A DNA stretch of 28,337 nt from sequence record NC_005872.1. The stretch is one strand, 5' to 3'. The position numbers and the translations under genes are program-made. Shown here piece by piece: positions 8,251 through 21,143 of this stretch. Within the stretch, counting starts at the first letter, position 1, and each line of letters starts with the position of its first letter. Below the pieces are notes generated by a model. The model did not search any database. It worked only from the letters and a program-made list of their open reading frames with translations, and was not told where the DNA came from.

Positions 8251-8799
8251 ATGCCTAATTTTGCCACGGCGGACATAGTCAATGATTACAATGCGCAACA
8301 GGTGTTGCTTACCAATATCGAGTGGATGTTTCTGTTTGCTTTCGTGTTGGCTGTCTTGTTTACGCTAGTTGATAGGGAGAGTAGGGCGTCAATGAGGCAC
8401 TTTCTCTCCGACTTGATGGTTAGGTGGGGCTTAGCTGGCTTGGGTCTGTGGACTATCGTGNTTATCTTCTTTGGGCTTTATGAGCTGGGGCTTCAGAGGG
8501 GCTTATTCCACTTTATCCCCTTTGTCGGTATTGCCGAATATGGGGGCGTGTGGGGCGTTGCTATCAGTGGCGCTATGGCTCTCTTATTCTTTGTGTCTAG
8601 CTTATTCCTTCAGGCGTTGATTAGGACCCCCAACGTGACTAAGGTGGTGAGGACTCCGTATTACCCCTATCTGGAGGAATACGCGCACTACCTATACCAG
8701 TGGTGGCGCTATTACCAGCAATATCAAGACTACTATCAGGCGCATCAACAAGAGGAATACGCATATGCCACCAATAGACAACGTGACAGGTCCTTTTAA
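8251..8799 (+). CDS. Membrane protein (about 3 TM) with Tyr/Gln-rich C-tail
   Basis: The track start 8167 lies inside the upstream gene; ATG 8251 lies about 27 nt after CTTAAATA. One ambiguous base at 8461. Confidence 0.75.
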   Translation: MPNFATADIVNDYNAQQVLLTNIEWMFLFAFVLAVLFTLVDRESRASMRHFLSDLMVRWGLAGLGLWTIVXIFFGLYELGLQRGLFHFIPFVGIAEYGGVWGVAISGAMALLFFVSSLFLQALIRTPNVTKVVRTPYYPYLEEYAHYLYQWWRYYQQYQDYYQAHQQEEYAYATNRQRDRSF

Positions 8800-10343: not shown

Positions 10344-11102
10344 ATGTTCATGTCTAGTACTAATATCCGCCACGGGCGTAGAATAGGCAAAGGCATGGTG
10401 GTGGCTGTATTAATATTGGCGCTATTGATAGGCTATGCCATTTATGCTAGCTTTAACCGTGGCACTAGCGGCGGCGGTGGTGGGAGCAACACCACGACAA
10501 CCATCACAGGCACTTCGGCACCATCTAACGTGCTTTATCCCAACGCGGCTCTAGCCAATGGTTTTGACTTAATCCTTGTGGAGGACCACGTAAACGTCAA
10601 CAGCGGACAATACTCTATAGTTGCCTCAGCGGTTGGGTCCTATAGGTCCATAGTGGCCTATGGCGGCTCTTCTGTGTCTGGCAACATAACCAACGGCATT
10701 GCGGTTATTAAGTACGGCGGCTATGAGATTCCGGTTGTCGGTTTTGCGTCTACCAACTCCAGCATTGTCCAAGACTTTCCTGGTATCCAGGTGAGGCTTA
10801 GCACTAGCGGCGGCTACGTGCTCTACACGCCTCTAAGCATGGCTATCTACTACAGGCACCTTCAGTATAACATCTCGAATACCGTGGTCCACGTGTGGGT
10901 GCCGTCTAAGACACAACCAGCCACCTTGGCTAGCGCCTCTCTACACGTGGTTATTGACCCAGAATACGGCACATATTACATCAACGGCGTGGCCTATGGG
11001 CTTGACATGGACACGCCTCCCAGACAGTATAGGGGCGTATTGAGGTCGTGGCTTGTCTACACTACAGCGGGCGGTAGCTACGTATTCACGATTAACCCAT
11101 AA
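10344..11102 (+). CDS. N-terminally anchored, probably glycosylated surface/virion protein
   Basis: Basic leader followed by a TM, GGGGGSNTTTT linker, NxS/T sequons and a beta-rich body. ATG 10350 fits the TATA spacing better. Confidence 0.75.
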   Translation: MFMSSTNIRHGRRIGKGMVVAVLILALLIGYAIYASFNRGTSGGGGGSNTTTTITGTSAPSNVLYPNAALANGFDLILVEDHVNVNSGQYSIVASAVGSYRSIVAYGGSSVSGNITNGIAVIKYGGYEIPVVGFASTNSSIVQDFPGIQVRLSTSGGYVLYTPLSMAIYYRHLQYNISNTVVHVWVPSKTQPATLASASLHVVIDPEYGTYYINGVAYGLDMDTPPRQYRGVLRSWLVYTTAGGSYVFTINP

Positions 11103-11131: not shown

Positions 11132-12013
11132 ATGTCTGCTATTGCCGAAACCATTGGTAAGTATGGTATATTAGGCTTACTGGCCGCTTTCGTGCCGGCT
11201 TTTGTGCATGGTGCCATGGCTGGAGCGGTTGGGCTGTCTGGTAATCCGGCTATAGCCACGATTCAGATTATCGCCTATATGGCTATCGTGGCTTATTGGG
11301 CTAGGCATAGCGTGGTTGACGGTTTGCTGGCTGGCATTGGTCTTGGGGCTGGGGTGGTTGCCGTTAGTCAAGCTCACGACTTGGCGATTCAAGGTATACT
11401 CTTTGGCATAGGCACGTTGATTAATACCATTGTCGACTATATCATTTCTGGCTTTCTTATGGGGCTAGGTTACGGATTTCTAATGGGGATATCTCCCACG
11501 GCTATATTGGCTGGTTTGGCTGGCTTTTTGTTTGGTGTGGTGGTTATGCTTCTGGTTAGGGTCGGGAATTTGCTTACTGAGGCTCTAGAGCTTGGCATAA
11601 CGGCCTTGTTTAAGAATTTGAGCGTAGGCTATGCCGCTCTTATTGCGCCTTTTGTGGGCGGCATCTTTGTCGGTGTGCCTCTTGGCGTTATGTTGCTGGT
11701 TTTCGGCTTTGCTTTGGCTATGGGGCTTGGGTTTGTTGTAGGCTTGGCTATAGCGTCTTTGCTCTTTATGTTTGGTCTTGTGTGGGCCTTTATCGGGTTT
11801 ATCCTTAACATAGGTCTCCTTGTGGCGGCTCTTGTCATATTCAAGACCTTCACGAAAAGCACGGACGTTATCCAGATTTTGCTGGATTTAGCCGTGATAT
11901 TCATTTTCAAGTTCATTGGGCCGGCTCTATATGCGGCTGGCTATGCTGGCTTGGTGACTAGGCATAGGGTTAGGGCTCTATACTTTATAGCTCTGGGTGC
12001 TTTGGGCTCATAA
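11132..12013 (+). CDS. Very hydrophobic Gly/Ala-rich polytopic membrane protein
   Basis: 293 aa, almost continuous hydrophobic helices with many GxxxG motifs. Confidence 0.85.
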   Translation: MSAIAETIGKYGILGLLAAFVPAFVHGAMAGAVGLSGNPAIATIQIIAYMAIVAYWARHSVVDGLLAGIGLGAGVVAVSQAHDLAIQGILFGIGTLINTIVDYIISGFLMGLGYGFLMGISPTAILAGLAGFLFGVVVMLLVRVGNLLTEALELGITALFKNLSVGYAALIAPFVGGIFVGVPLGVMLLVFGFALAMGLGFVVGLAIASLLFMFGLVWAFIGFILNIGLLVAALVIFKTFTKSTDVIQILLDLAVIFIFKFIGPALYAAGYAGLVTRHRVRALYFIALGALGS

Positions 12014-12363
12014 TGAAATGGTTTACCCACATAATTTGGGGCGCCTTTTTTCCGATATTGTTAGGCGTGGACGTACGTGAGGCGGTTTCATTGGCTGTGT
12101 TTCACACGGTATTGACGGACACCCTGGGGCATGTCGGACATGGACCTTACGTTAGGCGTGCTTCTTATCACGACGTCTTATCACTTTTCTTTGGTATTAT
12201 GATTGCGGCTATGATGCACAATTTGGCATATCTATGGCTAGGCGCTATCCACGTGGTGCTTGACAAGCTATCTCCCGGGCGGTTAGGTGTCAGCTATCTG
12301 TATTCTCTTGTGTGGGCCATTATACCCGCGATAATTTTATATATATTGGGTGTCCATCTTTAG
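12013..12363 (+). CDS. Membrane metal-dependent hydrolase, YdjM/DUF457 (DUF1286-like)
   Basis: FTH, TD.LGH, RRASYH and GAIHVVLDKLSPG follow the His/Asp pattern of YdjM-like proteins; TAATG coupling to the upstream gene. Confidence 0.6.
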   Translation: MKWFTHIIWGAFFPILLGVDVREAVSLAVFHTVLTDTLGHVGHGPYVRRASYHDVLSLFFGIMIAAMMHNLAYLWLGAIHVVLDKLSPGRLGVSYLYSLVWAIIPAIILYILGVHL

Positions 12364-12364
12364 C

Positions 12365-13111
12365 ATGCGGTTAAGTAAAATTCCAATGCCGTTGCTCATT
12401 GCCGCACTAGTGGCTACCACGGCGGTGGTGGTATATCTCCAGCTATCTGTGGTGTCTGTGCCAATAGTGGCGGACCCCAACTTTACAACTACGCTTGTGG
12501 CCGGCACTCCCTATCTGTGGCGTGGCGCGGCTAGTGAGTTCAACATAGCCTCTAACGCAACAATAAAGCTTACGTACATGCCTGTGGCGCACGTGATTTA
12601 CCTCAATGGACCTCTTGGCAACATAACGCTTGGTGGCGGTAAGTGGGTGGTCTACCTTAAGGGTGGGCGGCCTCTCTTAGTAGAGAAGGTTACCTATTCA
12701 ACCGGCTTTAGCGTGTATTACATCTTTAAGCTTGTCAACATGACTAAGGTTAGCGGGCTGAGCGTATTGGTGCCTAACGTGTTTACTGTCGGAGACGTCT
12801 TGTCTAGCGATGAGTTTAGCGCAATTCTATCCCTTGGCGCAACTACTCCGTTATACCGCGTTACCCAAATCACTACTAACGGCACACATATAATGGTCCA
12901 ACTAGGTGACGCGAGTCTATCACAGGTTGACCAGACAGACTATTTCCAGCTACCTCCAGTAGTAGAAACCACGGCTACTAAAATCACGTCTAGCGGCTTT
13001 GGCGTGAGCTATGTAGCTAACACGACTACCGTGTCGGCTTATGTCATGCCGTATCAACACATTGTTATTGTGCCTAAGGCTAACGCTAGGGTGGTTATAA
13101 CGGCGAAATAA
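12365..13111 (+). CDS. N-anchored beta-rich putative virion protein ('IPIP' leader family)
   Basis: KIPMPLLIAAL...YLQLSV leader resembles those of 17717 and 18554. ATG 12365 is preferred to GTG 12350. Confidence 0.75.
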   Translation: MRLSKIPMPLLIAALVATTAVVVYLQLSVVSVPIVADPNFTTTLVAGTPYLWRGAASEFNIASNATIKLTYMPVAHVIYLNGPLGNITLGGGKWVVYLKGGRPLLVEKVTYSTGFSVYYIFKLVNMTKVSGLSVLVPNVFTVGDVLSSDEFSAILSLGATTPLYRVTQITTNGTHIMVQLGDASLSQVDQTDYFQLPPVVETTATKITSSGFGVSYVANTTTVSAYVMPYQHIVIVPKANARVVITAK

Positions 13112-13171
13112 CTCCCCTTTTTTCTCTAGGATAGACAAATAATTTTTTAATAAGAGTCTAAATTATTCACC

Positions 13172-13912
13172 ATGTTATTGCCTGAAGGCGCTGGATTACT
13201 AGGACTACTGGCGATAGCGCTACTCAATAGAAAGGCTATACCCATTGCTCTGATTACGCTCTTTGTGTCCGCGGCTGTGGCTGTGGCAGGTGGGGCCGTA
13301 TACGCGGCTTTCACTCCCCTAATGGCTGGGGCCATTGCTTTGTATGCGCTTAGGCAGGAGGAGAGAGTCATTGAGAAGGTGGTGGGCCTCTTTCTGGGGC
13401 TGTCTATTATATGGGCCTCCGACAACACGGCTATAGCACAAGTGTTTGCCACGATTTCCTATGAAATCGTGAAGCCCTTCTTTGACGCGCTTGTCAATGT
13501 GATGGGTGTCATAGGCTTTGGTGGCGTCTTGGGTGCCTTGTTGGCGTGGTCTCTACTATCGCCTAGGCTTATTTCTATTGCTGAGAAGGAGCCTCTAGTG
13601 TCTATGGGTTATGTCCTCTTGGGTGCCGTCGTGTTGGCGGGTGCCGTTGCGGCTGTGCCTCCGTACGTGGCTCTAGCCATGGCTATAGCCTTACTTAACC
13701 AATTCAGTAGAGCCCTTAGGGGCAATATGGAGGCTCTTGGTGAGATTGCTCCGGCCTTGTTCATATTGGCTACCTTGATTCCTCCCACTACATTGGCGCC
13801 TTTGGGTGCCGTGTTGGCTGTCATTGAGCTAGCCTTTGGTGTCCTTAGTCGGAGGCACTTGGCTGGCGCGGCTATGTGGGCCACGGCGGCTATGTTGGTG
13901 GCCGGGCTATGA
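13172..13912 (+). CDS. Polytopic membrane protein
   Basis: 246 aa, Ala/Leu-rich; TTTAATAA about 26 nt upstream; preceded by a T6 terminator (13118-13123). Confidence 0.85.
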   Translation: MLLPEGAGLLGLLAIALLNRKAIPIALITLFVSAAVAVAGGAVYAAFTPLMAGAIALYALRQEERVIEKVVGLFLGLSIIWASDNTAIAQVFATISYEIVKPFFDALVNVMGVIGFGGVLGALLAWSLLSPRLISIAEKEPLVSMGYVLLGAVVLAGAVAAVPPYVALAMAIALLNQFSRALRGNMEALGEIAPALFILATLIPPTTLAPLGAVLAVIELAFGVLSRRHLAGAAMWATAAMLVAGL

Positions 13913-14859
13913 GCGTGCTTAGGATACTCTCTAAGGTATCGGTTGAGGCGGTTTCGCTATCTATAGCAATAGTGATATTTGCCATATTGGGCTTCAGCCT
14001 ATTCTCTATAGTGGGTGCTGGGTTGGCTTACCTAGGCATTAGGGCCTTAATGAGGTCGTGGGTGCTTGACCACCCACTCCCCTCCCCAATGCAAGTGTTT
14101 GTCTACTTGTTGGCGTTGTTTGGGCTTATTGGTGGCACTCAGTTCATAGTGTTTGCGGCTGTATTGATTGCGGCTTTCCTCCTTAAGGAGGTTAAGCTTA
14201 AGGCGCCCTCTGTAGATGGGCTTATAGAGTCTATGAAAATGGGTCTTGTTGGCGCGTTTGTGCCGCTATTGGGCTTGATATTGCCGATTATCCCGTTCTA
14301 TGAGACGGCTAAGAAATTCCGATATGATGTATNTGGCGCCTTGGCTCTGTTAGCTCTTGTCCTTGTCGGTATCATTGGCATGTATACTGCCGCGCTTACG
14401 GCGTCTACCGATAAGGTGAGCCTCTTATCTATCGGTGGCGTGTTCAATGACGCATTTGCTGGGTTACTAGGGCCTCTGTCTGAGTCTAACCCATTGTATT
14501 GGGTTGGCGTTATTTCTTATGAGGAGTTCATTGGGAGGGTTACTCCCTTTGCTAATGCCATGTTCACGCTCCTTCACTTACCCTCTAGGCTGTGGGCTGG
14601 CTATAAGATGACTGGCTCCGACTTGTTTGCCATAGGCATTGCGTTTATTCTCTTAATGAGCATCAACTTTAGCGCTAGGTGGCTCTGGGGCATCTACCAG
14701 AAGCATGGTATCGTGGCATCTATATTAGGGCATGCCTTTTACAATGCGGGTGTGTCCGCGTTTGTTGATTTGCTTAAGGGTAATCCGCTATATGCCATGG
14801 TGTTGCTGTTTCTAGGCTTGGTTGGATTTTTATATTCGCTAGGTAAGAGGGTAACATGA
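13909..14859 (+). CDS. CPBP/Abi (type II CAAX protease-like) intramembrane metalloprotease
   Basis: Motifs YEEFIGR (EExxxR), FTLLH (FxxxH) and GHAFYN (HxxxN) in the correct order. Start by ATGA overlap at 13909. Confidence 0.8.
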   Translation: MSVLRILSKVSVEAVSLSIAIVIFAILGFSLFSIVGAGLAYLGIRALMRSWVLDHPLPSPMQVFVYLLALFGLIGGTQFIVFAAVLIAAFLLKEVKLKAPSVDGLIESMKMGLVGAFVPLLGLILPIIPFYETAKKFRYDVXGALALLALVLVGIIGMYTAALTASTDKVSLLSIGGVFNDAFAGLLGPLSESNPLYWVGVISYEEFIGRVTPFANAMFTLLHLPSRLWAGYKMTGSDLFAIGIAFILLMSINFSARWLWGIYQKHGIVASILGHAFYNAGVSAFVDLLKGNPLYAMVLLFLGLVGFLYSLGKRVT

Positions 14860-15257
14860 TGCGGTATATATTGGCCGCAATAGCGATATTGGCCGCGCTG
14901 GCTGGCGTAGGATACATAACGCAAACTCGCGGCACCGTGGTCTACGGCGTATTTGACGGTGTCGGCGTTGCATATGAGGGTCATTACTACCTTATTGAGG
15001 GGAATGCTGTCAAGACTCCAGCTAATTCCACGATTCTTAAGGGCAAATTCATCTTATGGGGCGGCTACCTCATAAACGGCACGGAGGTTAAGCCTAAGCA
15101 CGTAATGGCGGCTTTTGTGACCAACAACGTGATTGTCGTGACTGGCACTATTGAGGTGGTGGCTGGTGAGGTCCATAAGATAGGCAACTATACCGTGGTT
15201 ACTGGTAATCCGGCTAGGGTGCTGGTTGTAGACGGCTACCTCTACCACCCTAAGTAA
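14856..15257 (+). CDS. Small N-anchored beta-rich protein
   Basis: ATGA overlap, N-terminal hydrophobic helix, followed by a T6 tract (15266-15271). Confidence 0.8.
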   Translation: MMRYILAAIAILAALAGVGYITQTRGTVVYGVFDGVGVAYEGHYYLIEGNAVKTPANSTILKGKFILWGGYLINGTEVKPKHVMAAFVTNNVIVVTGTIEVVAGEVHKIGNYTVVTGNPARVLVVDGYLYHPK

Positions 15258-15447
15258 AACCCGACTTTTTTCTTCTTTACAAACATATAACGCAGCTATT
15301 TTACTTTTTTCTAGGGTGTGGGGGAGCAACGGCACTCTTACCACATGTCAAGAAGGGCTTTGATATTTATCTCTCGCTTTGGCTAAGGGGGCCTCCCGCT
15401 TTATCTCGAAACTAAGGGGGAGGATAAGAGTTTTATATCTATGAGAT

Positions 15448-15861
15448 ATGTCTGCCATGAATAGATTAGGGTTCATAATATTGGTGACGTTGGCACTGAC
15501 GGCTCTATACTACCTATCGGTAACCATGTTTAAGCCTAGTCAGCCTCAGGTAGTCGTGGTTAAGTCTTCTGGGGCACAAAACACCAACCAATCTAGCACT
15601 CAAACTCCCACTCCGGTTATGCCTGGCGGACTCTATGCGTGTACTAAGGCCGTGTATCTAAAGGTGGGTAATGTGTACTTATGTGCCGACGTGGTCTATA
15701 ACGTGTTAAAAACGGATGACTCCCTTCAGGTGGACTTTCAAGGGGGCGTGGTTCAAGGATACTTTACGTTTATATCGGCACCCACTTGTCCGGTGACCAC
15801 AACGCCTCAGGGGATTCTTATTCCGTGTAGGACCCAGATTCTGATACCTACTAAGCAATGA
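15448..15861 (+). CDS. N-anchored protein with Ser/Thr/Gln linker and Cys-containing domain
   Basis: N-terminal TM followed by a QNTNQSSTQTPTP linker. ATG 15457 fits the TATA spacing better. Confidence 0.8.
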   Translation: MSAMNRLGFIILVTLALTALYYLSVTMFKPSQPQVVVVKSSGAQNTNQSSTQTPTPVMPGGLYACTKAVYLKVGNVYLCADVVYNVLKTDDSLQVDFQGGVVQGYFTFISAPTCPVTTTPQGILIPCRTQILIPTKQ

Positions 15862-15892
15862 AAGGTTTTTTAACGGTTGATTATGTAGTGCT

Positions 15893-16120
15893 ATGGTCTG
15901 GGAATTTCTAAGAGGTTCTACGTCACCGCCTAGAAACGTGTGTGTAGTGACGCCTACGGGCCCCTTTGACTTCACTATACAATGTAACGTTACACAAGAG
16001 ACCATTAGGCAAATCGTGGATAAGGAGAAGGTTTGTATCATAGAGCGTGATGAAAAGTCAGGCATGTTGATGTCCTACTGTGGACAGGGTAAGGATGTGG
16101 CGGCTAGGCTGTTTAGATGA
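15893..16120 (+). CDS. Hypothetical protein (75 aa)
   Basis: TTTTAAC about 26 nt upstream; coupled to the next gene by ATGA. Confidence 0.7.
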   Translation: MVWEFLRGSTSPPRNVCVVTPTGPFDFTIQCNVTQETIRQIVDKEKVCIIERDEKSGMLMSYCGQGKDVAARLFR

Positions 16121-16605
16121 CAGCCTTACGTAAGGCGATTGTATTAATCTACCTAGCCTTTTTGGGATTTTCGTGGCTTCAGCTAGTCTGGTTTTTTGGG
16201 TATCCTAGCGTGGGGGGTTTTATCTTGACCCCTAGCGCACACCCGTATATACCTCCCCTCTCTCTTTTGATTGTAAAGCCCTCTAATGAGTGCAACGGGT
16301 GGGCTGTCAAGTTGTTTGAGATTAACTGGATGGGTCTTAAGCTCTATCTGCCGGTTGTGCATTATTTCGCTAAGGTGGGTCCGGTTACCTATGAGTATTT
16401 CAACTACTACGTGATTACCAACAACGTGTGGGATAACGTGGTTAACTATTTCCATAGGATTATTGACCCTAAGTGGGTGGGCNTGCAATATAATGGGCCA
16501 TGTGTGGCTGAGGTCGTGGCTGTGATTCCGGCGCCTCTTGTCATCTTAATCATGGCTATAGCTCTCACTACAGCAATTTACTATGGTGCTAAAAGAGTGT
16601 GGTAA
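16117..16605 (+). CDS. Membrane protein with N- and C-terminal TMs
   Basis: Two terminal hydrophobic helices with an aromatic loop; T-tract after the stop. Confidence 0.8.
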   Translation: MTALRKAIVLIYLAFLGFSWLQLVWFFGYPSVGGFILTPSAHPYIPPLSLLIVKPSNECNGWAVKLFEINWMGLKLYLPVVHYFAKVGPVTYEYFNYYVITNNVWDNVVNYFHRIIDPKWVGXQYNGPCVAEVVAVIPAPLVILIMAIALTTAIYYGAKRVW

Positions 16606-16667
16606 TTCTTGACATTTCTTTTTGATATTTTTGGAAAAATTTAAATACGCGGGCGAATCCTAGAGTC

Positions 16668-16958
16668 ATGTCATATAACATAAGTGGAGGCATGGCAATA
16701 GGTAGCTACCCAGACGCTGTACAAGGCACTCCCTTTGTGGAGGCGGCTGAGGAGAAGTATAAGATGCGCTACGCGCTTGGCGTGTGCACGGCTCTGAGAG
16801 AGGCCGACCCCAAGGGCTTTGAGGAAACATTTGGCGCGGGCGAGGCTGGGCTGAGGAATTGTGCTCTGAAGGCTGGGGCCTACGCGGACAGAAACTTTGA
16901 CATCTGGAAAGTCAAGTGGCCCACGGCGCTTAGGGCTCAGATTGCAACCTTCGGGTAA
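16668..16958 (+). CDS. Probable major nucleocapsid protein (about 10 kDa, alpha-helical)
   Basis: Monocistronic: GGAAAAA-TTTAAATA 28 nt upstream and a T6 terminator at 16970. A trimer of about 10.5 kDa would fit the multimeric 33-kDa PSV major protein as I recall it. The assignment is inferred. Confidence 0.55.
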   Translation: MSYNISGGMAIGSYPDAVQGTPFVEAAEEKYKMRYALGVCTALREADPKGFEETFGAGEAGLRNCALKAGAYADRNFDIWKVKWPTALRAQIATFG

Positions 16959-17031
16959 GCCCAACCCGATTTTTTCCTAATTTTTACGGTTTTCAAATAA
17001 AGCATTTATATAGTGGGGATATTATATCCCC

Positions 17032-17346
17032 ATGCATATACAAACAGTACTTAAGACGGTATTAGAGGCTAAGAGGCGTGATTACTATGGCGTTGTTTTA
17101 AAGGCGGCTCAGATTCTAGAGGAGGAGGACCTCTGTAAGATGGCGGCTTTGGTCGTGGCTATTGTGACGTATAGGAAAGGCACCATTGACCCAGTTATCG
17201 TGGACTTTGCCGCAAAGTGTTTAAATAAGTATCCTAATTTGATACATGCTTTCACCAGAATTGGCGTCAATCCTCCAGGCTCTGTGGCAGGTGCTGACTC
17301 AGCTATTCAAGATACTAGAGGTGGTGGTAAAGAGCCCATTAACTAG
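17032..17346 (+). CDS. Helical hypothetical protein (104 aa)
   Basis: TTTATATA 27 nt upstream; a palindrome lies over the initiator. Confidence 0.75.
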   Translation: MHIQTVLKTVLEAKRRDYYGVVLKAAQILEEEDLCKMAALVVAIVTYRKGTIDPVIVDFAAKCLNKYPNLIHAFTRIGVNPPGSVAGADSAIQDTRGGGKEPIN

Positions 17347-17473
17347 CATATTTGTGGGGGCTATCCTAGCCTTTGGGGGGCGCCACGTAATCTATGGCAT
17401 AGGGCTGGCTCTCATATTATATGGCGTCTTAGCTCTCCTTAGCGCATGGCTTGGCTTTAAATTGGTGCCGTGA
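17246..17473 (+). CDS. Small 2-TM membrane protein (75 aa)
   Basis: Internal TTTAAATA 26 nt upstream with GATAC-ATG; amphipathic helix followed by hydrophobic segments. Confidence 0.7.
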   Translation: MLSPELASILQALWQVLTQLFKILEVVVKSPLTSIFVGAILAFGGRHVIYGIGLALILYGVLALLSAWLGFKLVP

Positions 17474-17694
17474 ATTTTGTGACGGCTAGCGAATTGCCTC
17501 AGGCTTTGATGAATAAGGACTTTAAGCGGTTTATGCGTGAGCTACGTGATAGGCTTTCGGAGGCCGGTATATACATTGATAGAATTAAGGCGATTACAAC
17601 GTCGGGGGATATTGTAGTTGTATATAGTGATGCTATCGTGGTAGAGCTGTCGTGGACAAATAAGTCGGTGATTAGGGTCAGGGAAAGGCTTTAA
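17470..17694 (+). CDS. Hypothetical protein (74 aa)
   Basis: GTGA overlap with the upstream stop; protein-like composition. Confidence 0.7.
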   Translation: MNFVTASELPQALMNKDFKRFMRELRDRLSEAGIYIDRIKAITTSGDIVVVYSDAIVVELSWTNKSVIRVRERL

Positions 17695-17716
17695 ATCCCA
17701 GTCTATATTTTTTGTC

Positions 17717-18526
17717 ATGCGTATACCAATTCCTTTAATAATGGCGGCGGCTGTGGCTGTAGGCGCAATAGTGACTATCATTATCCAAGTCAACCTACAA
17801 GTGCTGGGGTCGTGGGATGATAGATATGCGGCTTTCAACGGCACACACGTCTACCAGACAGGTCCTATGATTTCCACGTCTTATAAGACCCTATACTTGG
17901 GCTTTGGCACGGCTACTTTCCAGAATCCGGTTTCTGTCTACTATCTAGATAAAGTAAGGAGTGGGGCGGGTGGTGGCAACGGTGACCTTGGGAAATATCT
18001 ACCGGTTAGGCTTATGGTTACCTCCGGCTCTCTGCCGACTAACACCTATCTTAAGTGGACTAATCCGTTGGTGTCTACCGACACTAGGGCAATATACCTA
18101 GTAAGCGGCACCTCTAGGGGCTATGTGTTGGGTCGGTATTATGCCTCAGGTGCTGGAGTTTGGGTGGACGTGGCTGTGCCGATATACTACAAGGTGTCTG
18201 AGTCCTCTGTGCTTATCTATCCCATGGAAAAGGCCGCCGTAAACCCAAGTGAGGGATGTACGGTGTTGAAAAACGCCGGCTCACCATTTACTAGCATCTA
18301 TAAGTACGTCTATGCCGTGCTTGATGGACAAGCTTATGATTGCTCTTACAGTAGCTGGTCCTCTACCACGGTTGGTTGGACGTCGGTGGCTTCTTCTGTG
18401 ACTAGTGCCGCCTTGTATCCCTCTCCCACCTACTACAAGGTTACGGTGAACAACGTGGATATCTATCTATCCTATTGGTATGTGGTAAACGCGGACCCAG
18501 GTTATTTTGCTGTTAAACCGGGATGA
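17717..18526 (+). CDS. N-anchored beta-rich putative virion envelope protein ('RIPIP' family)
   Basis: MRIPIPLIMAAAVAVGAIVTIIIQV leader; Tyr/Ser/Thr-rich body; TTTAAAT 27 nt upstream. Confidence 0.8.
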   Translation: MRIPIPLIMAAAVAVGAIVTIIIQVNLQVLGSWDDRYAAFNGTHVYQTGPMISTSYKTLYLGFGTATFQNPVSVYYLDKVRSGAGGGNGDLGKYLPVRLMVTSGSLPTNTYLKWTNPLVSTDTRAIYLVSGTSRGYVLGRYYASGAGVWVDVAVPIYYKVSESSVLIYPMEKAAVNPSEGCTVLKNAGSPFTSIYKYVYAVLDGQAYDCSYSSWSSTTVGWTSVASSVTSAALYPSPTYYKVTVNNVDIYLSYWYVVNADPGYFAVKPG

Positions 18527-18553
18527 CTTTAAATATTGCACCCATTTTTTAAT

Positions 18554-19381
18554 ATGCCGCGTAACTTAAATAGGATTCCGATTCCTATGATGTTGGCATT
18601 AGCTGTGGCCGTGGGCTTAGCTGTCACTATTATTATCCAGATTACTGTGTTGGCGCCTCTACCGGCTGTCGTGGCGCCTATTGAGACCTCTGCCTCTAGC
18701 CTTGACACGGGTTCTAGCTCATATACCACGTCTTTGACTGTGGCGTCGGGCTATTATGTCAACTATCCCACATTAGCTGGTCTTGGAAAGATTCAGCTTA
18801 AGGTGAACACGACGGGGTGGTATTACCTCCAGAATGACTTAGTTCTCACGGTGGCGAGGAGGAGCACGGGTGACGTAACGTTTACCCTAGGCAGTGGCTA
18901 TAAGGTATATGTGAAGGAGATTAACACCACACACGCCTTTGTGTTCTATGATGAATATTCCACAGGCGTCGTGGCTAAAAAGGTCCAAGTGGGCTCTACC
19001 GGGTGGTATATCTATCACCCAGTTACCACAAACTATGACACCACCACGGTAAACACCATTAAGAGTCTGTTAACCTCATTGGGATATACCTATGCCTATG
19101 TATTCCAGCCTAGGGCTGACTACTTGAAATTTGACCCTAGCACCAAGAGCTTCTCTATATATTTTGACTATGTGGGCAGTGACGGCACGGTTAACTTGAA
19201 ATACCACTACTTCACCAACTCCACTAGTTTCACACCTTTGCCAATTAACGCGGCGGTTACTGTCAACGGAATTGAACAAATTGACATGTACAACTACGTG
19301 CTCTATCCGACGTGGGCGCTTTTCTACTATCAAGCAACCTCTAGCGTCGAAACCGCCTTTACAATTACTCCGGTCCAGTAA
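18554..19381 (+). CDS. N-anchored beta-rich putative virion envelope protein ('RIPIP' family)
   Basis: RIPIPMMLALAVAVGLAVTIIIQIT leader. ATG 18554 lies 26 nt after TTTAAATA (the track start is TTG 18536). T6 terminator at 19382. Confidence 0.8.
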   Translation: MPRNLNRIPIPMMLALAVAVGLAVTIIIQITVLAPLPAVVAPIETSASSLDTGSSSYTTSLTVASGYYVNYPTLAGLGKIQLKVNTTGWYYLQNDLVLTVARRSTGDVTFTLGSGYKVYVKEINTTHAFVFYDEYSTGVVAKKVQVGSTGWYIYHPVTTNYDTTTVNTIKSLLTSLGYTYAYVFQPRADYLKFDPSTKSFSIYFDYVGSDGTVNLKYHYFTNSTSFTPLPINAAVTVNGIEQIDMYNYVLYPTWALFYYQATSSVETAFTITPVQ

Positions 19382-19390
19382 TTTTTTCTA

Positions 19391-19429
19391 GAGGCGTAAA
19401 ATTTTTTAACCAGCATGTTTCTTTAGGAT
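19391..19429 (+). promoter_or_regulatory. Degenerate early-type promoter core
   Basis: CTAGAGGCGTAAAATTT is shared with 6378-6394; followed by ...GTTTC...GGAT-ATG. Confidence 0.7.
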
Positions 19430-19822
19430 ATGGGCGAAACTCCGGAGGGTCCAATGCCAAACAAAAAGGGTAAGTCGGAGGGCGGACAGATTAGGACAAT
19501 TCCCCTAAAGTACTACAAACAGGAATATGATATGGCGGCTGATTTGGTGCGGATGTTGCGTGGTTTGGGCGTTTTCATGCATGCTAAATGTCCGCGGTGT
19601 GGGGCTGAGGGCTCTGTTAGTATCGTGGAAACTAAAAACGGGTATAAGTACTTGGTGATAAGGCACCCGGACGGAGGCACGCACACGGTGCCTAAAACGG
19701 ACATTTCGGCTATACTTAAGGAGCTCTGTGAGGTTAAGAAGGACCTAGAGTATGTCCTTAAGCGCTATAAGGAATATGAGGAGGAGGGTGGGGTTAAGTT
19801 CTGTGCTGAGGGAAGGAAATGA
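19430..19822 (+). CDS. Zn-finger protein with C-terminal coiled coil (ORF131-type)
   Basis: CPRC...YLVIRH...TH metal-binding pattern and a heptad C-terminus. Confidence 0.8.
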   Translation: MGETPEGPMPNKKGKSEGGQIRTIPLKYYKQEYDMAADLVRMLRGLGVFMHAKCPRCGAEGSVSIVETKNGYKYLVIRHPDGGTHTVPKTDISAILKELCEVKKDLEYVLKRYKEYEEEGGVKFCAEGRK

Positions 19823-20268
19823 GGTTGGTTGTTGCTGGCGTGGCTCTTGAATTGCTTGACGCCTTGACAACTTTACTCATTATTTCTTTTGGGCTTGGTC
19901 GTGAGGCTAATCCGCGCCTCTTTTTTGTCAATGAGGAGCCTCTGTGGCTATTTCCGATATTTCTGGCTCAGGCGGCTTTTGTGGGCGGCGTGGGGTATTT
20001 GGCTTGGCTGGAGAAGAGGCGTGGCTACATGCGTGCCTACTATGTCACGGCTAGTCCGGTTGTTGCCTACCTAATCCATAAGTCCGTGGTGGTTGTCAAC
20101 AACGTTGCTGTGGGGCTTTTCGGCTTTGAGGGTCTTGACTATTACCTATCTGAGTTCATTAAGACCTCTATGGTGGTAGGGGGCCTTACTTACGGTATAG
20201 TTAGGGCCGTTACTCTTAAAATCCACTATAAAGCATTACATGATGTCCAATTTAAGGGAGAAGCTTAA
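19819..20268 (+). CDS. Membrane protein, DUF5658-like
   Basis: LDALTT...G.G.EANP motif followed by about 4 TMs; ATGA coupling. Confidence 0.65.
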   Translation: MRLVVAGVALELLDALTTLLIISFGLGREANPRLFFVNEEPLWLFPIFLAQAAFVGGVGYLAWLEKRRGYMRAYYVTASPVVAYLIHKSVVVVNNVAVGLFGFEGLDYYLSEFIKTSMVVGGLTYGIVRAVTLKIHYKALHDVQFKGEA

Positions 20269-20386
20269 GGAGAGGTTAAGGCGGATTCCATTGGCGCTAT
20301 TGCTCGCTTTGACAGTTGTCGTGGGGGCGTCGGTGATTATGGTGGTTCAAATTACCGTGTTGCCACCCCCAGCGGCACTTTTTTGA
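20240..20386 (+). CDS. 48-aa ORF homologous to the 'RIPIP' N-terminal anchor (below the track length cut-off)
   Basis: Manual translation MMSNLREKLKERLRRIPLALLLALTVVVGASVIMVVQITVLPPPAALF*; aligns with the N-terminus of 18554. Confidence 0.6.
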   Translation: MMSNLREKLKERLRRIPLALLLALTVVVGASVIMVVQITVLPPPAALF

Positions 20387-20400
20387 ATCGCTCTGATTCG

Positions 20401-20437
20401 GCAGTAACACTTAAAAACCCATGTTTCACTAGGATAT
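20401..20437 (+). promoter_or_regulatory. Degenerate early-type promoter core
   Basis: GCAGTAACACTTAAAAACCCATGTTTCACTAGGATAT-ATG resembles the cassette core. Confidence 0.65.
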
Positions 20438-21031
20438 ATGGCAGAAACTAAGTCTGTGGTGGCGTGGAATAGCCTATACGTGCGGGTAAAGTCTCACTCA
20501 GGGTGGTCCAACTATAGGGCGTGGGGTGACGGCACTCAATACGGCATTGAATTTAAGGGCACTACGCTTGGGTATTGGAAAGATGTCCTAAATCTCCTAG
20601 GGCGCATGGTGAGGGCTAAGGCTGAGCCTCCTAGGGAGGTGGTTAAGACGGCTAAGCTCTTATTTGAGCACGTAGAGGCTTATCTACGGCATAGCCACAT
20701 CTTTGGTGATGACTTTGTCGGCACGGCTGTGGATGTTGAAGACCCGGAGTCTCCTTACATAGACTTTACGCTATACATGGAGGTGACCACGAAACATATT
20801 GACGTGGTGGACCATATAGTGTCCGACGGTGGGGAGGACCTTGGGGAGGCTGTGCCTGGTTGGTTTGTCACTATTGCGGCTACATATGAGGGATATGACG
20901 GAGGCAATGGGGAGGGTAAGCACACGGTTAAGCGTAAGCTAGTGTTTAAGGGGCAGATTGACCGTGACGTATTGTGGCGGGAGTTCTATACAACTATTAA
21001 GCGTGCGGTTAACGCTCTGCCTTTGGAATAG
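20438..21031 (+). CDS. Paralog family member 1 (AKAEP / GYDG / AYNA family)
   Basis: Shares YRAW, RM..AKAEP, GYDG...HTV and RAVNALP with 23326, 23977 and 26068. Confidence 0.85.
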   Translation: MAETKSVVAWNSLYVRVKSHSGWSNYRAWGDGTQYGIEFKGTTLGYWKDVLNLLGRMVRAKAEPPREVVKTAKLLFEHVEAYLRHSHIFGDDFVGTAVDVEDPESPYIDFTLYMEVTTKHIDVVDHIVSDGGEDLGEAVPGWFVTIAATYEGYDGGNGEGKHTVKRKLVFKGQIDRDVLWREFYTTIKRAVNALPLE

Positions 21032-21052
21032 GGGCTTTTTTGGCCTTTATTT

Positions 21053-21143
21053 GCTTTTAAATCGGCGCGCCTTTTTTGTTTCAACTCTCCCCCTTTCTTT
21101 ACGTGAGGCGTAAAATTTAAAAATCCGCATTTCATAAGGATAC
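21053..21143 (+). promoter_or_regulatory. Full promoter cassette: box A (-91), box B (-66), TTTACG-N5-CGTAAA (-46), TATA (-28)
   Basis: GCTTTTAAAT at 21053, GTTTCAAC at 21078, palindrome 21098-21114, TTTAAAAA, GGATAC-ATG. Confidence 0.9.

Follow-up and report, generated by a model that had tools for sequence, protein, structure and literature searches.

A shared N-terminal leader on unrelated membrane proteins of globuloviruses and its possible relation to gp21, a probable divergent CPBP-like protease

Introduction

Proteases of the CPBP type can be paired with conserved substrate signals, as the initial annotation of the DNA studied here had noted: the myxosortase MrtX is a CPBP enzyme that cleaves the tripartite MYXO-CTERM tag (a motif, a transmembrane (TM) helix and basic residues) of dozens of unrelated proteins (PMC11980579). 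In this study, we analyzed a stretch of 28,337 nucleotides from record NC_005872.1 (hereafter the window), in which a polytopic membrane protein with CPBP-type motifs, gp21, is encoded among proteins that share a short N-terminal segment, hereafter the leader, made of a basic, proline-containing motif and a TM helix. The window is 100% identical to AJ635161/NC_005872, the complete linear genome (28337 bp) of Pyrobaculum spherical virus (PSV), which is the type globulovirus of the family Globuloviridae. PSV, whose virions are spherical and enveloped, infects hyperthermophilic Thermoproteales and leaves its host cell without lysis (PMC12662056). About 98% of globulovirus proteins have been reported to lack similarity or function, and a study of PSV2 annotated four proteins by HHpred, the gp21 homologue not being among them (bioRxiv 10.1101/2020.01.16.907410). 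Our search of the literature found no paper that ties globuloviruses to CPBP or CAAX proteases or that describes a shared leader.

A conserved leader on proteins with unrelated ectodomains

Four open reading frames (ORFs) of PSV, which begin at positions 12365, 17717, 18554 and 20240 of the window, share the segment [RK]-I-P-(I/M/L)-(P/A)-hydrophobic near their N termini. Together with the genomes and metagenomic contigs described below, 56 ORFs are headed by this leader. Its core can be written as [RK]1-Φ2-P3-Φ4-P5-Φ6-Φ7-Φ8-A9-[AL]10, where Φ denotes a hydrophobic residue, and is followed by about 15 further hydrophobic residues and often by prolines. P5 is present in 54 of the 56 ORFs and A9 in 53; P3 was fixed by the search pattern, and A9 lay outside the pattern. 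The overall layout is the initiator Met, 0–14 variable and mostly basic residues, the junction motif, a hydrophobic stretch of about 20 (20–23) residues, and often a proline-rich stretch thereafter. In most members the motif lies only 1–2 residues from the Met (MRIPIP, MRKIPIP, MMRLPLP). The initial annotation had described a basic-IP-hydrophobic-Q leader on all four PSV ORFs. The shared segment is real, but the Q occurs in 15 of 28 leaders and is not conserved, the conserved extra position being the Ala at +9, and the ORF at 20240 is a gene remnant.

The sharing of the leader is far beyond chance. Three full-length matches were observed in PSV against 0.02 expected from residue shuffles, and 23 were observed in an intermediate lineage (see below) against 0.85 expected from shuffles; all matches lie on the coding strand, each beginning with a Met. 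The DNA of the four PSV leader segments differs at synonymous sites, which rules out recent gene conversion between them, and selection therefore acts on the peptide. Other N-terminal anchors of the same genome are of a different kind: gp16 (10344–11102), gp22 (14856–15257) and gp23 (15448–15861) are N-terminally anchored and rich in N-glycosylation sequons or in Thr/Pro, do not have R-Φ-P-Φ-P, and share 12–22% identity with the leaders. A word-based search with gp30 residues 1–40 as the query covered 5.8 billion proteins and returned gp30 orthologues only, with no cellular proteins among them. A Tat signal, which would need an RR pair in an S/T-R-R-x-F-L-K-like motif, was considered and rejected, as the majority of leaders contain just one R or K (MRIPIP, MRKIPIP, SKIPMP) and RR pairs are limited to some, among them the 20240 type and the leaders of the distant contig L027.

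The first leader ORF is that of a known virion structural protein, VP3 (gp19), annotated in GenBank at 12350..13111 on the plus strand, which corrects and extends what had been said of it. Its likely true start is the ATG at 12365 (MRLSKIPMP...), since its relatives begin MR(L/F)(S/T)KIP(I/M)P, and its leader, KIPMPLLIAALVATTAVVVYLQLSVV, comprising motif and TM helix, lies at 12377..12454 (plus strand). VP3 has 6 sequons, or 2.4 per 100 amino acids, the highest density in the genome (genome mean 0.47). On the same strand, gp30 (ORF270, 17717..18526) has the leader MRIPIPLIMAAAV... at 17720–17797. gp31 (ORF282, annotated at 18536..19381, with an ATG at 18554) has the leader RIPIPMMLALAVAVG... 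at 18572–18649, followed by the proline-rich segment APLPAVVAPIETS. The fourth ORF, 20240..20386 on the plus strand, is a remnant of 48 codons that is absent from the GenBank and RefSeq annotation, and its leader, RIPLALLLALTVVVG..., lies at 20282–20359.

The ectodomains behind the leader had been suspected to be unrelated, and the comparisons bear this out. BLASTP aligned VP3, gp30 and gp31 in the leader only, and hhalign found no similarity between their ectodomains. After removal of the leaders, the 56 proteins fell into 14 BLAST clusters. Comparisons by hhalign between the ectodomain families of the four isolated globuloviruses and the PSV-like contigs were negative with one exception, gp30, which matched TTSV1 gp26 and TSPV1 GP23 (hhalign probability 94%); two of the 14 clusters thus merge, leaving 13. 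gp30 is the only leader family that can be recognized in all four isolates. Its AlphaFold model has a helix (residues 5–30), a low-confidence linker of about 28 residues (31–58) and a confident beta-rich domain (59–269, pLDDT ~90). A Foldseek search of the PDB with this model found no match (best E 0.25), so that a pilin-like protein or a known adhesin was discarded as an identity for gp30; the modeled beta-rich domain may be a new fold. Relatedness between ectodomains is seen in two further cases. gp31 is clearly a paralogue of the 20240-type gene, and in TTSV1 (L003) the ORFs at 16363–17073 and 15291–16010 have paralogous ectodomains (31% identity, E 7e-12) behind different anchors, one leader-like (MFRWFPALILAFV) and the other generic (MTPRNKRLLAAALAIIA). 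Because these TTSV1 paralogues carry different anchors, their sequences suggest that an anchor can be swapped without a change of ectodomain.

Variation of the leader-gene repertoire between strains

The ORF at 20240 had been counted as one of four leader ORFs and potential substrates. Comparison with the metagenomic contig L021 (JGI sample 3300045880), whose identity to PSV is 99.6% and whose gp21 is the same, shows that it is not an intact gene. At the corresponding position L021 has a gp31-type gene of 285 amino acids, and 733 bp of it (L021 17364–18096) are missing from PSV at 20377–20379: PSV 19800–20377 aligns with L021 16786–17363, and PSV 20379–21100 aligns with L021 18097–18818. PSV keeps 46 codons of the 285-amino-acid gene and then runs into a stop. 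ORF 20240–20386 is thus the stub of a gp31-type paralogue left by a 733-bp deletion. Full-length genes are found at the same position in L005, L009 and L010 as well. L021 also has an additional gp30-type paralogue (~14700–15512) that is absent from PSV. Since PSV is without two genes or gene parts that are seen in L021, the repertoire of leader proteins varies between near-identical strains, and the number of leader genes, 3–5 per genome, differs even at 99.6% identity. PSV possibly lost leader-gene sequence through laboratory passage.

Distribution of the leader and of gp21

The leader was found in all four isolated globuloviruses and in two distant metagenomic lineages. There are three leader ORFs in PSV2, four and a degenerate fifth in TTSV1, three in TSPV1, and 4–5 in PSV-like metagenomic contigs; all four isolates carry both the leader ORFs and a gp21 homologue. 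On the distant contig L027, where the gp21 homologue is only ~22% identical, three consecutive leader ORFs begin one gene upstream of it. They start with MRRLPLALAVAAV, MRRLPLAVALAAA and MLRRLPLAAALAAV, and their ectodomains are unrelated and rich in sequons. The same leader is present in L028. The intermediate branch comprises 39 loci with a GC content of 0.47–0.69, in which 23 ORFs begin with M-(x)-R-Φ-P-Φ-P and a TM helix. In this branch, each of the 14 contigs that extend 5.8 kb or more upstream of the gp21 homologue carries at least one leader ORF, and none of the three with 5 kb or less does.

Among the isolates and the contigs with enough flanking sequence, no genome was found with the leader but without a gp21 homologue, or the reverse. 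The co-occurrence check proposed in the initial annotation thus finds the two together wherever the flanks suffice, but it has no discriminating power: because no genome has one of them alone, co-occurrence cannot separate functional coupling from the presence of two core genes, and it can be explained by common descent.

The contigs L032–L070 and L024–L030 (GC 0.47–0.69) carry gp21-like, VP1-like, VP2-like and DUF5658-like genes in addition to leader ORFs. Their gene content points to an unclassified globulovirus-like assemblage much larger than the four isolates.

gp21 and its similarity to the CPBP/Rce1 superfamily

gp21 (ORF317) is encoded at 13909..14859 on the plus strand, next to VP2 (13172–13912). 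It is a polytopic membrane protein, with ~12 helices in an AlphaFold 2 model (pLDDT 84, pTM 0.84). It is a core gene, the first of the gp21–gp26 (VP1) block that is kept in all isolates, and homologues are found in all the others (PSV2, TTSV1 and TSPV1). A scan of metagenomes found 39 further gp21-like loci, and a scan of IMG/VR with the A4 profile found TTSV1 only.

The three CPBP motifs are where the initial annotation had placed them, in the plus-strand ORF 13909–14859: EEFIGR (motif 1, EExxxR) at amino acids 205–210 (14521..14538), FTLLH (motif 2, FxxxH) at 219–223 (14563..14577), with a conserved P225-S-R227 next to it, and HAFYN (motif 3, HxxxN) at 275–279 (14731..14745). In an alignment of 26 members (21–72% identity), nine columns are invariant: E205, E206, R210, H223, P225, I252, H275, Y278 and N279. 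The only invariant polar or charged residues of the family are E205, E206, R210, H223, H275 and N279, and this set matches the catalytic residues of CPBPs one for one and in the same order. All three motifs are kept in 27 of 29 homologues examined, and the F position of motif 2 is W or F in the TTSV1 and TSPV1 homologues.

Several weak signals point from gp21 to the CPBP superfamily. A consensus of the C-terminal domain of the family, compared with 24,736 Pfam families, has PF02517 (Rce1-like) as its top match (E 0.0072), covering motifs 2–3. P0082, an outlying family member, has weak matches to PrsW (E 0.033) and to an Rce1-like family (E 0.3); tblastn of P0082 against plasmids gave nothing useful. 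Ten annotated CPBPs were taken for comparison from a plasmid collection, in which a synthetic probe of our own design matched 1055 records. With hhalign, the gp21 family aligned with these ten CPBPs at P 0.0019 (score 30.6) with all three motifs lined up; two of 150 block shuffles equaled that score, and the reversed control scored 13. Enlarging the gp21 alignment by 29 homologues did not improve the result (P 0.006–0.008). In a Foldseek search of BFVD with the gp21 model, a 'CAAX protease self-immunity' protein ranked third (E 0.2, probability 0.51), with the TTSV1 homologue ahead of it. The total span of the motifs is similar, 64–69 residues in the gp21 family and 66 in the ten CPBPs. From these comparisons, the similarity of gp21 to CPBP/Rce1 proteins is real but weak.

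Neighboring genes and state of the deposited sequence

Two genes adjoin leader ORFs. gp18 (ORF117, 12013–12363) lies directly upstream of VP3 in PSV-like genomes and overlaps the VP3 start. It encodes a small His-rich membrane protein with conserved WxTHI, HTxLTDxxGH, HD and HxxLDxxSPGR and has relatives in PSV2 (ORF11) and TSPV1 (GP31). The PSV2 homologue has been assigned to DUF1286 (bioRxiv 10.1101/2020.01.16.907410); our Pfam scan of ORF117 gave no match, including to DUF1286. gp18 could be a second membrane hydrolase beside a leader protein. gp33 (ORF150, 19819–20268), which extends past position 20240, where the gene remnant begins, is the sole ORF of the block with a significant Pfam match (DUF5658, E 1.8e-6), and DUF5658 is also found on the distant contig L024.

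The deposited PSV genome contains five ambiguous bases (N), at 8461, 14333, 16483, 25628 and 26899. The N at 14333 is the cause of X142 in gp21, and ORF163 owes an X to another of the five.

Discussion

Taken together, the data can be read as a family-specific N-terminal signal-anchor for variable surface glycoproteins, encoded alongside a probable CPBP-like protease, gp21; we regard the chances for and against this joint reading as even. The leader would insert beta-rich, sequon-bearing ectodomains of unrelated families into the membrane with the N terminus inside and the C terminus outside, and would probably stay on the mature protein as its membrane anchor. Its junction motif may recruit the proteins to, or retain them in, the budding envelope. 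A retained N-in/C-out anchor is favored because the hydrophobic stretch is of anchor length and VP3 is a major virion component. gp21 would act as a morphogenetic membrane protease: judging from its conserved residues, it most likely represents a very divergent, active member of the CPBP superfamily, or an offshoot of it, with a role in virion morphogenesis, and the leader proteins are candidates for its substrates. The leader genes expand, contract and decay between strains, as expected for proteins of host interaction.

We consider gp21 probably to be a very divergent CPBP-type protease, and a number of observations weigh against this assignment. All statistical links between gp21 and CPBPs stay under conventional thresholds: the PF02517 match reaches 17 bits where the cut-off is 22.4, and the hhalign probability against the ten CPBPs is just 5–26%. 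When 1.84 billion representative proteins were searched with a HMMER profile, no CPBPs were reached, the 20 matches all belonging to gp21's own family (some at 21–25% identity), and in Foldseek the gp21 model had a best E of 0.14 in the PDB, with no Rce1 among the 50 matches listed. Searches of Pfam and NCBIfam with single sequences of the family gave nothing significant, none of its 65 metagenomic relatives has a Pfam domain, and nothing relevant came from the PDB when it was searched by sequence with the A1 and A4 profiles. EE and the His of motif 2 are 17 residues apart in PSV and 22 apart in the intermediate lineage; in the ten CPBPs they are separated by 31 residues and in MrtX by 41 (PMC11980579), which makes the gp21 spacing 9–24 residues shorter than in bona fide CPBPs; the distance between the two His residues is 52 or 42 in the gp21 family and 35 in the ten CPBPs. 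gp21 thus departs from the canonical motif spacing in the four-helix core (TM4–TM7), and the 'intact CPBP motifs' first described stand as regards their conservation but not as regards their spacing or a significant single-sequence family match. By family criteria, membership of gp21 in the CPBP family has weak statistical support and is not established. It is conceivable, though on balance we think it rather unlikely, that gp21 is not a protease and that its E, E, R, H, H and N bind an ion or metal or serve transport or envelope structure, the likeness to CPBPs being convergent or due to chance. The lack of a significant sequence or fold match to any CPBP and the atypical spacing would fit, as would the top Foldseek PDB matches, which are transporter-like and all insignificant; noncatalytic proteins with a CPBP fold are known (PMC13692083). 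What makes us prefer a divergent protease is that the invariant positions of gp21 coincide with the catalytic residues of CPBPs one for one and in order, that three independent weak signals point to one clan among ~25,000 Pfam families, and that the shuffled and reversed controls generally score lower than the real comparison.

For the leader, the question is what reads it. The initial annotation had proposed a private viral sorting or maturation system, and the parts that stand are the sequence-specific N-terminal signal on unrelated ectodomains, the CPBP-type residue set and the co-occurrence; the co-occurrence is not discriminating, the CPBP link is weak, and one of the supposed substrates is a remnant. 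In such a system the leader would be the recognition and cleavage signal of gp21, an N-terminal analogue of the myxosortase–MYXO-CTERM pair, which we think unlikely if worth keeping in view; a coupling of leader and gp21 in any form is doubtful to a similar degree. Cleavage of the leader by gp21 is plausible by analogy with MrtX. A short motif at the membrane boundary with sequence-specific conservation is typical of processing and sorting tags and not of generic signal peptides, the leader and the gp21 homologue are conserved together down to ~22% gp21 identity and over GC contents of 0.47–0.69, three leader ORFs stand immediately upstream of the gp21 homologue in L027, and MrtX provides the precedent. 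On the other side, the joint presence of two core genes is uninformative where neither is ever seen alone, the CPBP activity of gp21 is putative, and the motif is on the predicted cytoplasmic side, in most members so close to the Met that cutting ahead of it would achieve little. A cut after the TM helix would free the proteins from the envelope, yet VP3 is a major virion component; nor is the leader a true mirror of sortase-type tags, whose motif is outside the membrane. We hold it quite doubtful that gp21 recognizes the [RK]-Φ-P-Φ-P...A tag and, in the manner of a sortase, either processes a changeable set of envelope or filament proteins or passes them on.

That the leader is an ordinary Sec signal peptide cut by host signal peptidase I, its conservation reflecting descent of paralogues with diverged ectodomains, seems improbable. 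The leader has the n-h-c layout, with a basic N terminus, a hydrophobic core, prolines and small residues (VPIVA↓DPNF in VP3 and VLG↓SWD in gp30, the arrow marking the candidate cut), and gp31 and the 20240-type gene are indeed paralogues. Cleaved signal peptides, however, usually show less conservation than any other part of a protein, and here the leader is the sole conserved part across 13–14 families, P3, P5 and A9 being near-invariant over very distant lineages. The hydrophobic stretch of ~20–23 residues has the length of a TM anchor, the anchors of gp16, gp22 and gp23 in the same genome manage without the motif, and in TTSV1 one type of ectodomain occurs with two different anchors. Because a sequence-specific tag is conserved on unrelated ectodomains, a generic signal peptide is disfavored and recognition by a partner favored. 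A point that does count against a retained anchor is the candidate signal-peptidase site of VP3-type proteins (V-x-A↓D-P-N-F), ~32 residues after the motif; because this site is plausible, cleavage by a host enzyme is possible in these proteins. It is more improbable still, to the point of being hardly credible, that the leader belongs to the class III (type IV pilin-like) signals and that the proteins are pilin-like subunits of globulovirus filaments or protrusions. The architecture is similar, with a short basic N terminus, a conserved junction motif, a hydrophobic helix of ~20 residues and a beta-rich domain. A class III signal was nevertheless rejected, as the junction is [RK]-Φ-P-Φ-P with no G/A at +1 in 56 leaders and the [KR]-[GA] cleavage motif is lacking; in the gp30 model, a low-confidence linker of ~28 residues separates the helix from the domain, and no pilin was matched in the PDB. 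A width of 3 nm is thin for a pilus with a helical core. Filaments are indeed borne by TSPV1 virions, and their reported width is 3 nm (PMC10970483).

The analysis has several consequences. gp21 becomes a candidate enzyme with defined putative catalytic residues, and the leader tag identifies likely envelope or host-interaction proteins on globulovirus-like contigs; together, leader and gp21 define an uncultured assemblage far wider than the four isolates. How envelope proteins are chosen is an open question for archaeal viruses that exit without lysis, and if the leader is a sorting or processing tag, it would show how an enveloped archaeal virus selects the membrane proteins of its envelope. 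The part played by CPBP proteases in protein sorting, a recent discovery, would thereby be widened. If gp21 does recognize the tag and handle the proteins that carry it, the pair would be the first N-terminal counterpart of myxosortase-type, CPBP-dependent tags and the first of its kind to be described from a virus.

Among known systems, gp21 resembles the CPBP/Rce1 proteins (PF02517, whose clan includes PrsW) in being polytopic and in having EExxxR, FxxxH and HxxxN in this order in its C-terminal helices. It differs from them in five to six extra N-terminal helices, in being virus-encoded and belonging to the core genes of a family of archaeal viruses, and in its scores below family thresholds, its shorter EE-His and longer His-His distances and the lack of an Rce1 match in Foldseek. 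As in the systems of MrtX and of sortases, exosortases, archaeosortases and rhombosortases, one membrane protease-like gene per genome accompanies several to many unrelated tagged surface proteins, and the globulovirus leader, like MYXO-CTERM and related tags, is a short signature motif beside a TM helix and one or more basic residues. The sortase-type tags (LPXTG, PEP-CTERM, PGF-CTERM and MYXO-CTERM) are C-terminal, with the motif outside, then the TM helix and then a basic cluster inside, whereas the leader is N-terminal and runs from basic residues through the motif to the TM helix. It thereby doubles as the sole signal for export and insertion, with its motif on the basic, cytoplasmic side, and unlike MYXO-CTERM it has no Cys or lipidation site.

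The leader shares with the class III signals of archaea, which are served by prepilin peptidases (PibD/FlaK), a variable short basic N terminus, a conserved junction and a hydrophobic helix that is retained in class III proteins and probably in the leader proteins; it differs in a junction without Gly/Ala, in a virus without an aspartic prepilin peptidase and in an ectodomain model that is not pilin-like. In Gram-positive bacteria, the YSIRK-G/S motif lies inside the N-terminal signal of unrelated surface proteins and is thought to set their site of delivery. The leader, too, is a conserved motif in the N-terminal signal of unrelated surface proteins, but motif, organism and position are different, and the YSIRK signal is cleaved by signal peptidase, whereas the hydrophobic segment of the leader is of anchor length. 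A further likeness is to the attachment modules of phage tail fibers and viral spikes, in which a conserved particle-binding end carries an exchangeable, fast-evolving distal domain; leader genes likewise vary in copy number, and copies decay between close strains. The leader differs from these modules in being a membrane anchor of 25–30 residues in a lipid envelope and not a folded adaptor domain. The parts of the globulovirus arrangement are thus akin to known kinds, a divergent CPBP-like enzyme and a sorting or anchor tag, and what is new is their combination in an archaeal virus and the N-terminal position of the tag.

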